Source: Salpingoeca rosetta (lineage: Eukaryota; Protista; Choanoflagellata). Taken from it: a DNA stretch of 64,000 nucleotides. The notes under the pieces are model-generated. The model did not search any database. It was not told the DNA's origin and saw only the letters and a list, made by a program, of their open reading frames with translations. Positions within the stretch are counted from its first letter, which is position 1; every line of letters begins with the position of its first letter. The DNA is taken from the NCBI GenBank assembly GCA_033442325.1, contig JAWQFM010000029.1:842332-906331 (forward strand). Reading direction: 5' to 3'. Positions 23,580 to 50,732 of the stretch are shown piece after piece. The translations under genes were made by a program, and so were the position numbers.

Positions 23580-26500
23580 ATGGGTGATTCGGACAAACCC
23601 GTTGCCCAACCACAGCAACAGCAGCAACAGCAGCATGATGATGATGGCGCTGCACCACCGTCGTTGGCACCCTCTTCGGGGCCAAACACACCGACACCAT
23701 CGACGCAATCGACGCCAACATCAACATCAACACCAACCACCACCACCGACGCCACGCCGCCGTCGTCCTTGTCCTCGTCAACATCCACGGGGACAATGTC
23801 CACAAGTTCGTCGTCTGCGGGCGTGACATCGCACCAGCAGACGGGTGACAAGAAGAAGACACCGCCGCCCGTGAAACCGAAGCGCCGGCAGCCGCCAGTC
23901 CCTGCACAGAGGCCACGGCCAAAGGCAGGCGCACAGGGCCCCGCTGTCGCGCATGAGGAAGGAGACGCGGACGCAGACACATCAGCGCAGCGGGCAAGGA
24001 AGCAGAAGCCGCCAACGCCGCCGCGCAAGGCAAAGCACAGCGACCCAAACCCACAGCAGCAGCAACAGCAGCCGGACAGCAGCGTGGGCGAAAAGCAGAC
24101 AGCAAAGACGCAACCGCCACCTCCTCCGGTGAAGTCCAAACCGAAGAAGGAAGCAGATGTGGGTGCGACCGTGCACGAGGGCGCTGTCACGCAGCAACAG
24201 CAGCCGCAACAGCAGCCGCAACAGCAGCAACAACAGCCACAGCAGCCGCAGACGAAGCCCGCACCAGCTCCAAAGCCCGCGCCGGCTGCAAAGCCGACAC
24301 CAACCGCGAGCAAGGGCGAGTCTGCTGAGTCAGCAGCTCCCACCCCTCCGCCACGGCCAACAAAGCACACGCCAGAGAAGACGAAGGTGACAGGTACAGG
24401 TGACTCAGCAACACAAGAACCACCACAACCGCCAACGGCACCAAACGATGTGTCATCCAAGTCAGTTGATGATGATGATGATGACACGACACAGCCCAAG
24501 GGCGATGGCGATGGTGGAGACCTGCAGGGCACCGCTTCTGATTGTGCTGCACATGACGGTGATGAGAGCCAAGAGCACCAGCAACAGCAGACGAAGGATG
24601 GTGACCCGAAGCCACAGCAACAACCACAACCGCCACAACAGCCATCACCACAGCCGCCACAACAGCAATCACCACAGCAGCCACAACAACACCCACATCA
24701 ACAGCCACCCCAGCAGCAAGAGCACCCCACCCCACCATCGGCCTCCAAGAAAGCGAAAGCGGAAGCCAGACGCGCGCGAAAGGAAGCACAGCGGCTGCAG
24801 CTGCTCGAGATGCAGCGGCAGATGGCAGAGCTGCAGAAGCAGTTGGCTGAGACCAGCGGCAGTGATGATGATGATGATGACGATGATGATTACGATGATG
24901 TTAGTGTTGGGGTCGGTCATCAACAAGGCCCAATGTCCGATCAGCCATTGCCGCCTTCCACGACTCAAGCAGCACCATCGAGTCAGCCGCAACCCATCGC
25001 AGCATCTGCATCCAACAGCGGTGGCGGCTTCCATCGCGACGCTGAGCCAACAGATGGGACGGCAACAGTTGTGGTCGACGACGATGATGATGATGATGAC
25101 GCTGATGAGATTGACGCGGGTGCCACAGTAGCTGGTGAGAACATGGCAGTTGCCGACAAGCCTGTGCACGCCGACGTTAAACACAATCATCACCACCACC
25201 ACGAAGGCAACGCCGCCGATGCCAGCAACGGTGGCGTTGACATTGACGTGGCAGATACCACCGCCGTCACGGCATCTTACGATGAGTATCAGGACCACGA
25301 AGAGTACGACAATGACGAAGACGATGAAGATGATGGGTTTGGGTTCAAGACGCCACCAAACACGCTGAAGGAGGATGGCGAGGGTCAAGCATCGGCATCC
25401 ACAGCGAAGACAGATACACCGCCCAAGCTGGCCGACGCAGCCAGTGCTGCCAGCGCGATGGCAACTTCCAAACCAACACCAACGCACGTGCCCGGCAGCA
25501 AGGCCTCAGCACAACCGCTCGAACATCCTTTGGGTGACGGGTACAGCTCGCACCAGGAAGCCACCACCCAACAACAGCAACCGCAGCAGCAGCAGCAGCA
25601 CCAACCACAACGACAGCAACAACAAAACCCGCAGCAGCAGCACTCCAACTCACATCAGCAGAATCAGCCCCATCATCCATCACCGCAATCATCGTCATCA
25701 ACGCCCCACGTGCCTGGCAGTAAGGCAACAGCGCCGCCAGGATCATCACCGTCGTCATCACAGCACCAAACGCAGTCGTCTGCCATGACCAAGTTTCCCA
25801 CCAACCCTTCAGCTGCTGCAACCACGACATACCACCAACACGACACAGCAGGTGCGAGTGTGTGCGTGTGTGTGCGTGGGTGTGGTATACGCTTGTATGG
25901 AGTATGTTGTTGCGTTTCTGAGGTTGTCGTCACTTGAACTTGCGTTCCTCCCATTCATCCAATCTTCAATTGTGCGCCCCGTACGAATTCAACAGCTGGC
26001 CCTCCCGTTGCCGATGCGGTGAAGCAACAGCTGAAACCAATGCGCGACGTCAAAGTCGTACGTTGAAGAACACACCTCTACAACATGCAACACACAACAC
26101 ACACACATAGGCACACACACACACACACAAAGCACACACACACACACACACACACACAAAAGCACACACACACACACACACACACACACAAAAGCACACA
26201 CACACACACACACACACACACACACACACACACACACACACACACACACACACACACACAAAAGCACACACACACACACACACAGGCACACACACACAAA
26301 CACCCCCTCTCTTCCAAATGTACATCACCCACGCATTCCGCTGTCCTCACATGCTGCTTCCTGTGACGTCATCGCTTCTGTTGCGCAGCACGTGCACGTG
26401 ATGGAGGCGCCCGGACAAATCATCCACATGCTCGGGAGCCACCCGGTGTTTGGCCGACTTGACGACGAAGATGGCAAGGAGGAGTGGATGCCAAACGCCG

Positions 26501-50000: not shown

Positions 50001-50732
50001 AGCATCTCCGCCAACGTCACCGCGCCCTCATCGCCGATGGAGTTGTTGTGCAGGCTGTGCAGGCACACAAGAACCGCAGGGAGCGACGGTGAACACACGT
50101 CCAAACATGCGCAAGCAGGGGAGGAGAAAGGGGTGCAACATGCAACACCGCCACCCCAGTCAACCATGCATGTCACACGAAGCAGATTCATCATCACCAC
50201 GCACAAGAGCGTTTTGAGGCAGGTGTTGTCCTTGAGCGCCTCGGCCACCGCACGCGCCCCAATGTCGCCGAGGCCATCATCATCCAAGCTGTAATTCCAA
50301 ATGGTGTGTGTCATGAAATGAGCAAGAAGACTGAGGATACACAGAGCAAAAACATGAGGGTGCCAGTCCCAACCTGCCACAAACACACACAGTGTGTCCA
50401 GGCGGTGCGAGGGGACAGGACACGCACATGTGAACACCCAACAGCAAGCCACACCACGCCCATGGCAACACAAGGACAAGCCAAGCAGAGAGAGGGGGGA
50501 AGAATAAGCACAATCACAAGAAGTGTCGAAGTGTCCTTCTGTCCAACACATGCATGCATGTTCCAACACGTCGTTTTGGTTGCCTTTGCACTCACTCTGC
50601 TATCTCCCCACATGTGTTGTTGGCGATGGCCCTAATCTGGTCCTTCACCCGTTTCTCCTTCTTTGCAGGCAGCTTCGTCTGCGCCAGCAACGCCTCCACC
50701 TCCTCCCTCGCTCTCTTCTCTCCGCCGGACAT
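44031..50732 (-). CDS. ROCO-family protein: RI-like LRRs - ankyrin repeats - Roc GTPase - COR - TIR - SAM
   Basis: ATG at 50732 (MSGGEKRAREEVEALL...IRAIANNTCG). LRRs LHNNSIGDEGAVTLAEMLKHNTTL. ANK GDTPLHVACRHNQPAIVKLLLEKGAD. Roc KLIFIGQGRAGKTS, IFDLGGQSTFYIFHPFFLT, LIVGTFAD. COR LQFLHLYSMVLYF...VILSPQW...YLVPAILP...FLPEGLF. TIR YDAFISYR...TFVDANNLETG...DNVLLEW. SAM WLNRHSL...GIDTLEVL...MGPAMKL. Confidence 0.9.

Follow-up and report, generated by a model that had tools for sequence, protein, structure and literature searches.

Convergent RNF213-family and Roco-TIR-SAM genes at the inner edge of a subtelomeric repeat in Salpingoeca rosetta

In the bacterivorous choanoflagellate Salpingoeca rosetta, a gene for an RNF213-like giant E3 ubiquitin ligase (PTSG_08934) lies tail-to-tail with a gene for a Roco protein of LRR-ANK-Roc-COR-TIR-SAM architecture (PTSG_08933), which raises the question of whether the two form a linked immune system. 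The locus was explored in a stretch of 64,000 nucleotides (nt) of assembly GCA_033442325.1 (contig JAWQFM010000029.1, positions 842,332 to 906,331 of the forward strand), which is referred to here as the window and provides the coordinates used throughout. An earlier note on this DNA, which had correctly recognized both a bacterivorous unicellular holozoan (here a choanoflagellate) as the host and the two domain architectures (borne out below by Pfam, alignments, and the SAM fold), read the pair as a linked sensor and effector. If true, such a cell-autonomous immunity locus would be a remarkable case, predating animals, of a sensor linked to RNF213. The best explanation is, instead, that these are two independent, intact, and transcribed genes, adjacent where unique chromosome DNA meets a shared subtelomeric repeat, a reading to which we assign a probability of roughly 0.8. 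The two genes seem to have become neighbors through duplication, and not as partners in a linked immune system.

The junction between the two genes

Window positions 34031 to 60732 are the exact reverse complement of part of scaffold GL832981.1 (927,411 bp) of assembly GCA_000188695.1, where window position x corresponds to record position 34349 + (50732 − x). The two large genes converge, as had been noted earlier, with the stop codon of PTSG_08934 (TGA, 42524 to 42526, plus strand) and that of PTSG_08933 (TAG, 44033 to 44031, minus strand) separated by a spacer of 1,504 nt, in agreement with the approximately 1.5 kb given before.

Seven paralogue loci, each with 10-kb flanks, were compared with the window. 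PTSG_08933 is the innermost gene of a shared block that begins more than 12 kb upstream of it, reaches at least position 62329, and has DNA identities to the sister loci of 72 to 91% depending on the segment (82 to 91% in the 5′ and upstream parts and 72 to 86% in the 3′ part of the Roco gene). Homology to four of the loci (L003, L004, L005, and L008) stops at 44041 to 44159, at the Roco stop codon, and homology to L002 goes on at 79% to 42992, with all end points of the block homology falling between the two stop codons.

At L002, the block contains an intact single-exon gene of 736 amino acids (aa). The window keeps only residues 524 to 730 of it, as a 5′-truncated relic with 61% identity and internal stop codons, which is found in the same order and orientation as at L002, up to the 3′ end of the Roco gene. 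The small open reading frame (ORF) between the two genes that had been described as LRR-like is present (43307 to 43603, plus strand) but is a fragment of this relic, and neither the ORF nor its intact 736-aa relative has a match in Pfam, with no LRR match at E values up to 10. The block homology and the truncated gene end between the two genes indicate that the adjacency is derived and not a conserved linkage. A copy of the block would have been broken inside the 736-aa gene and joined approximately 0.4 kb past the stop codon of the RNF213-like gene.

Alternatively, the Roco block might have originated in the window and been copied from there to the other chromosome ends, and the adjacency might then be ancient without having to be functional. 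This reading is favored by the intact and expressed state of the window copy and by the fact that the order of copying is unproven. However, the 736-aa neighbor is intact at L002 and truncated here, so that the junction must postdate the ancestral block from which the window and L002 copies descend, and the blocks have diverged by only approximately 10 to 20% in DNA. We consider an ancestral position improbable.

The earlier note had itself held that Roco-TIR paralogues, if numerous, would speak against a linked pair. At least 19 named S. rosetta relatives of PTSG_08933 were found in one length-limited search, six of them 91 to 94% identical and seven more 72 to 75% identical. No RNF213-like gene is located within 10 kb of the Roco gene at any of the seven paralogue loci, and, together with the gene truncated at the junction, this speaks against a conserved linkage among these loci. 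Those 3′ neighbors of the paralogues that can be named encode the 736-aa protein, which has no known function, a 684-aa protein and then a P-type ATPase, NT-C2 and DnaJ proteins, an LRR-COR-PARP protein, a nitrile hydratase, or two small proteins and then a UBA1-like E1.

Six copies of the block were recognized, with the genes PTSG_08933, PTSG_10524, PTSG_08524, PTSG_12317, PTSG_12359, and PTSG_08722. For each of the six, a scaffold end lies 2.5 to 35 kb away and transcription runs inward along the chromosome; PTSG_08933 itself is located 34 to 41 kb from the 5′ end of its scaffold. The ends that hold the copies are listed as predicted telomeres matching other telomeres in Table S3 of Fairclough et al. 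2013 (PMC4054682). With scaffolds matched to the supercontigs of that table by size, they correspond to the 5′ ends of the 927-kb and 739-kb supercontigs, the 3′ ends of the 1,669-kb and 1,638-kb supercontigs, and both ends of the 1,067-kb supercontig. No TTAGGG runs were found in the window or in loci L001 to L005, and the subtelomeric assignment relies on the mate-pair analysis of the genome paper (PMC4054682). The methods of that paper describe shared subtelomeric repeated regions in S. rosetta, in a passage that does not name their gene content (PMC4054682). PTSG_08934 is the first chromosome-specific gene inside the subtelomere. The pair is indeed placed, as had been proposed, at the edge of a fast-evolving region, and this edge is the inner boundary of the shared subtelomeric block.

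Logan contigs from four public runs, two of DNA and two behaving like RNA, were placed on window positions 38001 to 44000. In the two RNA-like runs, contigs extend over the 3′ end of the RNF213-like gene to 42712 or 43042, none covers 43201 to 43600, and past the relic there is only a poorly matching contig from 43739. Given that the DNA runs cover 43201 to 43600, the relic is not detectably transcribed. The transcripts of the two genes are separated by an untranscribed spacer of approximately 0.5 to 0.7 kb.

A misjoin in the 2010 Sanger/454 scaffold, by which a subtelomeric block was attached to the 3′ flank of the RNF213-like gene, would produce the same arrangement. Two gaps and three single-base errors are found nearby, the contigs of all four runs break at 43042 to 43062, and in the two DNA runs (X9 and X17) the reference-type contigs over 42535 to 43833 have approximately 40% of the depth of the gene, while other contigs with the 3′ end of the RNF213-like gene diverge from the reference at position 42508 in X17 and 42689 in X9. 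Such an artifact is nonetheless highly improbable. Independent contigs run from the RNF213-like coding sequence over the boundary between unique DNA and relic (42932 to 42992) as far as 43042, the relic continues in L002 order and orientation to the Roco 3′ end, and a separate prediction places a telomere, matching other telomeres, at this scaffold end (PMC4054682).

X9 and X17 differ from the reference at approximately 0.7% of sites, and the 30-nt loose ends of their contigs at 42508 and 42689 have no match in the window or in the fetched loci. The drop in depth and the divergent contigs between 42508 and 43833 may reflect structural polymorphism between strains at the subtelomere boundary.

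Expression, chance, and the question of linkage

Both genes are transcribed. Counts for eight libraries (ThA2, ThM, ThAM, SwM, RCA1, RCA2, RCAM, and CCM, in this order) are 437, 175, 226, 246, 12, 93, 106, and 7 for PTSG_08933 and 687, 496, 544, 710, 282, 599, 483, and 118 for PTSG_08934 (PMC4054682). These are raw counts without library-size normalization, in which reads of the approximately 90%-identical Roco copies may be misassigned, and the libraries include no immune-challenge condition.

Several observations weigh against two independent genes brought together by duplication. Both genes appear in the list of genes expressed more highly in thecate cells and swimmers than in colonies, which holds 1,149 of 11,629 genes (PMC4054682), and their raw counts correlate over the eight libraries (r of 0.79, or 0.92 for log counts). 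Three of six Roco-proximal flanks hold ubiquitin-system genes, namely, this E3 and two E1-like genes. Moreover, no contig spans 43042 to 43062, so that the relic and the Roco gene are joined there by the reference assembly, and the distinction between source and derived copy is inferred from one truncated gene.

The two E1-like genes (ThiF/UBA1-type) lie within 10 kb of the Roco gene on the chromosome-internal side, at 18588 to 19320 of L004 and 20786 to 27108 of L008. They have no DNA similarity to each other, and a coincidence is possible.

A selected sensor-effector immune module, in which the Roco-TIR-SAM protein senses microbes and the tail-to-tail layout aids co-regulation, would account for the shared expression, and both RNF213 and TIR proteins function in animal immunity (bioRxiv 10.1101/2025.10.14.682297; 10.64898/2026.04.20.719644). 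A TIR of a sister gene is furthermore among those tested in a study that names S. rosetta as a producer of cyclic ADP-ribose (cADPR) (bioRxiv 10.64898/2026.04.20.719644). However, the adjacency occurs at 1 of the 8 loci examined, and a duplication boundary, a truncated gene, and the untranscribed spacer lie between the partners. The common expression class is broad, comprising 10% of genes, and is affected by the limits of the counts described above, which makes it weak and unspecific support for linkage. In addition, the RZ finger of PTSG_08934 is without the general-base His proposed for ester-linked ubiquitylation of the lipopolysaccharide (LPS) type. We regard a selected module as very unlikely. 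With many paralogues, no RNF213-like gene within 10 kb at the seven loci compared, and a duplication that ends between the two genes, the linked system put forward earlier is not borne out, and a functional linkage of the pair is not supported and is positively disfavored. Any immune role, like the biochemical mechanisms proposed below for both proteins, is put forward by analogy.

The rough probability of at least one immediate adjacency between a Roco gene and an RNF213-like gene somewhere in the genome is 0.3 to 3%, calculated from 11,629 genes, 19 to 40 Roco genes, and an assumed count of one to five RNF213-like genes. Chance adjacency is not negligible given the many types of "immune-like beside immune-like" pairs that a reader would flag over 625 stretches of this kind. 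Little synteny overall was reported in the genome paper (PMC4054682). The adjacency, dated here to a recent chromosome-end duplication, is not citable as a conserved linkage. The coordinates of the features are collected in Table 1.

Table 1. Positions in the window of the two genes, their domains, the assembly gaps, and the elements of the junction
Feature	Position	Strand	Basis or remark
PTSG_08934, RNF213-family giant E3 ligase gene	23580–42526	+	Pfam, RNF213 alignment, family profile, annotation
Profile-matching part of large exon	29438–37951	+	Profile of 34 RNF213-like homologues, profile positions 158–2442
AAA core	~33461–36214	+	Within large exon
Assembly gap 1	38475–39041		Left edge is a poly-Asp (GAT/GAC) run
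C3HC4 RING finger	39342–39455	+	zf-C3HC4, 38 bits (cutoff 21); zf-RING_2, 35.9 bits
RZ finger, CxC variant	40695–40826	+	PF20173, 43.5 bits (cutoff 27)
Assembly gap 2	41210–41715		Estimated 506 nt; true length at least ~0.8 kb
Pseudogene relic	42932–43528	+	Matches residues 524–730 of the 736-aa gene at L002
Shared subtelomeric duplication block, at least 18 kb	44041–62329		DNA comparison with sister loci
PTSG_08933 (P0121), Roco gene LRR-ANK-Roc-COR-A-COR-B-TIR-SAM, 1,420 aa, 14 exons	44031–50732	−	100% identity, Pfam, exon map
C-terminal SAM domain	44055–44249	−	AlphaFold2 fold and structural search
TIR domain	44587–45381	−	TIR_2, 30.1 bits (cutoff 28)
Roc GTPase, then COR-A and COR-B	45523–47897	−	P-loop GQGRAGKT, DLGGQ
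LRR cassette, ribonuclease-inhibitor type	48963–50288	−	LRR_6, E 5.5e-14; splice sites read

The RNF213-family gene PTSG_08934

Judged by its sequence, PTSG_08934 belongs to the RNF213 family. The annotated product of 5,737 aa is listed with RING-type zinc finger and AAA+ signatures in supplementary file 9 of the genome paper (PMC4054682). Its dynein-like AAA core aligns to the human and mouse RNF213 chains (E 3.7e-83 over approximately 720 residues), and two pairs of Walker A/B motifs, GCGKT/FLDE and GKPGNSKT/VLDEVG, are kept in the alignment to human RNF213. From the mouse RNF213 structure, we take these two pairs to be located at the active modules AAA3 and AAA4. The profile of 34 homologues matches the large exon in three segments (E 8e-30, 1e-64, and 5e-251), and a weak fourth segment (E 2.4e-4, 5.8 bits) carries the match from approximately 36214 to 37951. 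The best relatives listed for the AAA core, approximately 33 to 43% identical, come from cnidarians, molluscs, echinoderms, and glomeromycete fungi, together with many metagenome proteins. There was no choanoflagellate entry among the 120 AAA-core homologues listed, and the annotated 5,737-aa product of the gene itself was absent from this search. The N terminus is a long low-complexity extension. Downstream of the AAA core, the RING finger is complete and lies between the two assembly gaps, and the RZ finger follows approximately 450 residues beyond it.

The RZ motif of PTSG_08934 reads CPCGE...NCG...CARC, versus CPNGH...GECG...CIDC...H in the human protein (native residues approximately 4505 to 4537, placed by motif). 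In human RNF213, C4516 has been assigned as the nucleophile and H4537 as the general base of an RZ finger with a Cys/His zinc site (bioRxiv 10.1101/2025.10.14.682297). The alignment to the human protein shows that the Cys at the position of the 4516 nucleophile and three zinc-ligand Cys are kept, that Glu, adjoined by an extra Cys, stands in place of the zinc ligand His4509 (the CxC form, also found in the homologues P0087 and P0120), and that the general base His4537 aligns to a gap. With the general-base His aligned to a gap, LPS-type chemistry cannot be assumed for PTSG_08934, and LPS ubiquitylation by this protein is only an analogy with the mammalian enzyme. The variant could be used to test which residues matter for non-protein ubiquitylation.

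PTSG_08934 resembles mammalian RNF213 (mysterin) in its giant size and in its layout, with a dynein-like AAA core that carries Walker A/B motifs at the AAA3 and AAA4 positions, a C3HC4 RING, and then the RZ finger. In contrast with the mammalian protein, it has the low-complexity N-terminal extension, the CxC-variant RZ finger without the His4537 base, and two unsequenced stretches. Only the AAA core is well conserved between the two, the identity of approximately 40% referring to the best relatives of PTSG_08934. If the mammalian enzyme is taken as a guide, an ATP-controlled AAA core would regulate an E3 module formed by RING and RZ. S. rosetta has, then, an RNF213-family gene with the full AAA-RING-RZ layout, the coding sequence of which is incomplete in the reference.

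As judged from the family profile, both assembly gaps lie in one colinear RNF213-like gene, a few hundred codons of which are absent from the reference. The profile, built from full-length homologues, is colinear across both gaps. It advances 544 positions across gap 1, versus 374 residues present and approximately 189 estimated to be missing, and 403 positions across gap 2, versus 228 residues present and approximately 168 estimated to be missing, the match past gap 2 being weak (E 0.41). Of the four gap edges, three are extended by contigs of the four runs, over 163 to 824 nt, and the frame is open in the 30-nt loose ends of these contigs. At the right edge of gap 1 a contig reaches 247 nt inward, and at gap 2 the contigs extend 163 to 317 nt to the right of 41209 and have 797 to 824 unmatched nt to the left of 41716, with open frames in all cases. 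The latter indicates that gap 2 measures at least approximately 0.8 kb and not 506 nt. At the left edge of gap 1 the contigs stop at the GAT/GAC poly-Asp run, which probably caused the gap. No contig that bridges gap 1 or gap 2 was found in the four runs. All four runs differ from the reference by single-base indels at 41173, 41748, and 41755, beside gap 2. The indels, with their local frame shifts, are probably errors of the reference.

A perfect tandem duplication of 153 bp (27419 to 27726, plus strand; 2.0 copies of 51 codons, in frame) was observed in a coding exon of PTSG_08934, and it could be a very recent event or an assembly artifact.

The Roco gene PTSG_08933 and its subtelomeric relatives

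The Roc-COR exon is 100% identical to the public S. rosetta protein PTSG_08933, and the 14-exon model obtained from directly read splice sites equals the annotated protein. With the full protein, the Pfam models LRR_6, Ank, Roc, COR-A, and TIR_2 score above cutoff, COR-B just below, and SAM_2 under the threshold. The LRRs are organized with one repeat per exon, in four exons of 84 nt and one of 78 nt that share a common phase. COR follows directly after Roc (Roc, 58.9 bits; COR-A, 66.2 bits; COR-B, 23.3 bits versus a cutoff of 27). A low-complexity insert of approximately 145 aa, rich in Gln, Lys, and Ser (window 47053 to 47592, residues approximately 411 to 553), divides the Roc domain in two. 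The N-terminal part of the domain corresponds to positions 1 to 48 of the Pfam model and contains the P-loop, and the C-terminal part corresponds to positions 43 to 117 and contains DLGGQ.

The C-terminal domain is a SAM domain that is sub-threshold in sequence and confirmed by its modeled fold. SAM_2 scores 13.5 to 17.9 bits in PTSG_08933 and 20.9 bits, at the threshold, in the sister P0124, and a sequence search of the region against the PDB gave no match. A single-sequence AlphaFold2 prediction of TIR-SAM was unusable, with a predicted local distance difference test (pLDDT) score of 46, and an alignment of paralogues was used instead. With 14 paralogues, the SAM region was predicted to form five helices (pLDDT of 88). 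The top matches of this model in VIA-align are almost all SAM domains (Z of 8.0 to 5), among them those of p73 (Z of 8.0), the tandem SAM of SARM1 (Z of 6.6 to 6.9), and that of TIR-1. Foldseek likewise ranks SAM domains first, but with E values above 1, and a protein-atlas feature search, with a score below 0.9, gives no more than a lead.

In the TIR domain, the predicted catalytic residue is Glu1171, in an NVLLEW motif (codon at 45004 to 45006). S. rosetta is named among the sources of cADPR-producing TIR domains, and row 33 of Table S4 of that study lists as tested the TIR of F2UB80 (1,352 aa, TIR at 1034 to 1255, Glu1118) (bioRxiv 10.64898/2026.04.20.719644). F2UB80 corresponds to P0126 (PTSG_12359), a sister that is 93% identical to PTSG_08933 over the region compared, and its Glu1118 is located in an identical NVLLEW motif. 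NADase or cADPR activity of the TIR of PTSG_08933 is predicted, only the sister F2UB80 being listed as tested. Both genes of the pair were already in the public annotation, and a sister TIR has already been tested for cADPR production.

Like the Roco proteins LRRK2, Dictyostelium Roco4, and Chlorobium Roco, PTSG_08933 has LRR and ANK repeats followed by Roc-COR-A-COR-B, and it shares with LRRK2 a GTFAD motif in place of NKxD in Roc. Unlike these proteins, it has no kinase, ends in a TIR-SAM output, and has the insert in Roc. With SARM1 and Caenorhabditis elegans TIR-1 it shares a SAM domain beside a TIR with a catalytic Glu, and their SAM domains are among its structural matches. However, the order is reversed (TIR-SAM), there is one SAM instead of two, and a Roco switch takes the place of the ARM autoinhibitory domain of SARM1. 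Putting these likenesses together, PTSG_08933 would be a kinase-less Roco protein, with LRR and ANK repeats as the sensor of a ligand or partner and the Roc-COR GTPase as the switch, as in Roco biology. The TIR would then oligomerize with SAM and consume nicotinamide adenine dinucleotide (NAD+) or make cADPR, in the manner of SARM1.

The sister PTSG_12359 has the same architecture and the identical catalytic motif; it differs in lying at another chromosome end, beside an LRR-COR-PARP gene, and in having more LRR cassettes at its locus. Multi-copy receptor-like genes in common blocks at chromosome ends, mosaic identity between copies, and variable repeat number are also features of subtelomeric families such as Plasmodium var and those of yeast, and of plant NLR clusters, a likeness drawn here from sequence and arrangement and not from signs of switching, silencing, diversifying selection, or immune function. 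The Roco-TIR-SAM genes sit in a shared subtelomeric repeat, the kind of place where variable receptor families evolve in other organisms. It is tempting, if doubtful at this stage, to see in the subtelomeric LRR-ANK-Roc-COR-TIR-SAM genes a fast-diversifying repertoire of innate immune receptors in a close unicellular relative of animals, which would be varied by end duplication, exchange between copies, and gain and loss of LRR cassettes and would signal through NAD+ or cADPR in the manner of SARM1. At the inner border of the block, turnover that may differ between strains would then occasionally bring receptors next to ubiquitin-system genes, as here, where the border comes to within 0.4 kb of a ligase of the RNF213 family. 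In the literature searched, no account of the Roco-TIR-SAM family as subtelomeric was found. This family with its exon-cassette LRRs is a more interesting lead than the gene pair. S. rosetta is genetically editable, so that both the RNF213 variant and the receptor repertoire can be addressed experimentally.

At L005 (GL832967), upstream of PTSG_12359, nine strict-motif LRR cassettes were found at 6393 to 10939, versus two or three at L001 to L004 and L008. Several of them belong to a separately annotated 238-aa gene just upstream of PTSG_12359, which suggests either a variable copy number of the LRR exon-intron units or a misannotated N terminus of PTSG_12359. At L008, the comparison of 10306 to 17090 with window positions 50494 to 44043 gave an identity of approximately 91% over the Roco 5′ part and 72 to 86% over the 3′ part, a mosaic that suggests recombination or gene conversion between Roco subfamilies.

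The right flank of the window had been taken for decayed pseudogenes, a view that the comparison does not bear out. This flank belongs to the multi-copy block, and the genes annotated there within 51980 to 60152, of 339 aa (minus strand) and 232 aa (plus strand), are kept at 82 to 91% at the sister ends and have no match in Pfam. The left flank holds kinesin, PHD-finger, and P-type ATPase genes, where housekeeping genes had been noted. P-type (Na/K-type) ATPase paralogues with 71 to 86% DNA identity are found near two Roco copies, at window positions 1827 to 4545 and at 23178 to 26526 of L003. They were considered as a sign of a larger shared block, and this was rejected because they point in opposite directions, relative to the Roco gene, at the two loci. 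Long (AC)n or (GT)n microsatellites occupy several introns of both PTSG_08934 and PTSG_08933, including 26090 to 26303 and 46949 to 47044, and are read through as coding in the mechanical list of ORFs.

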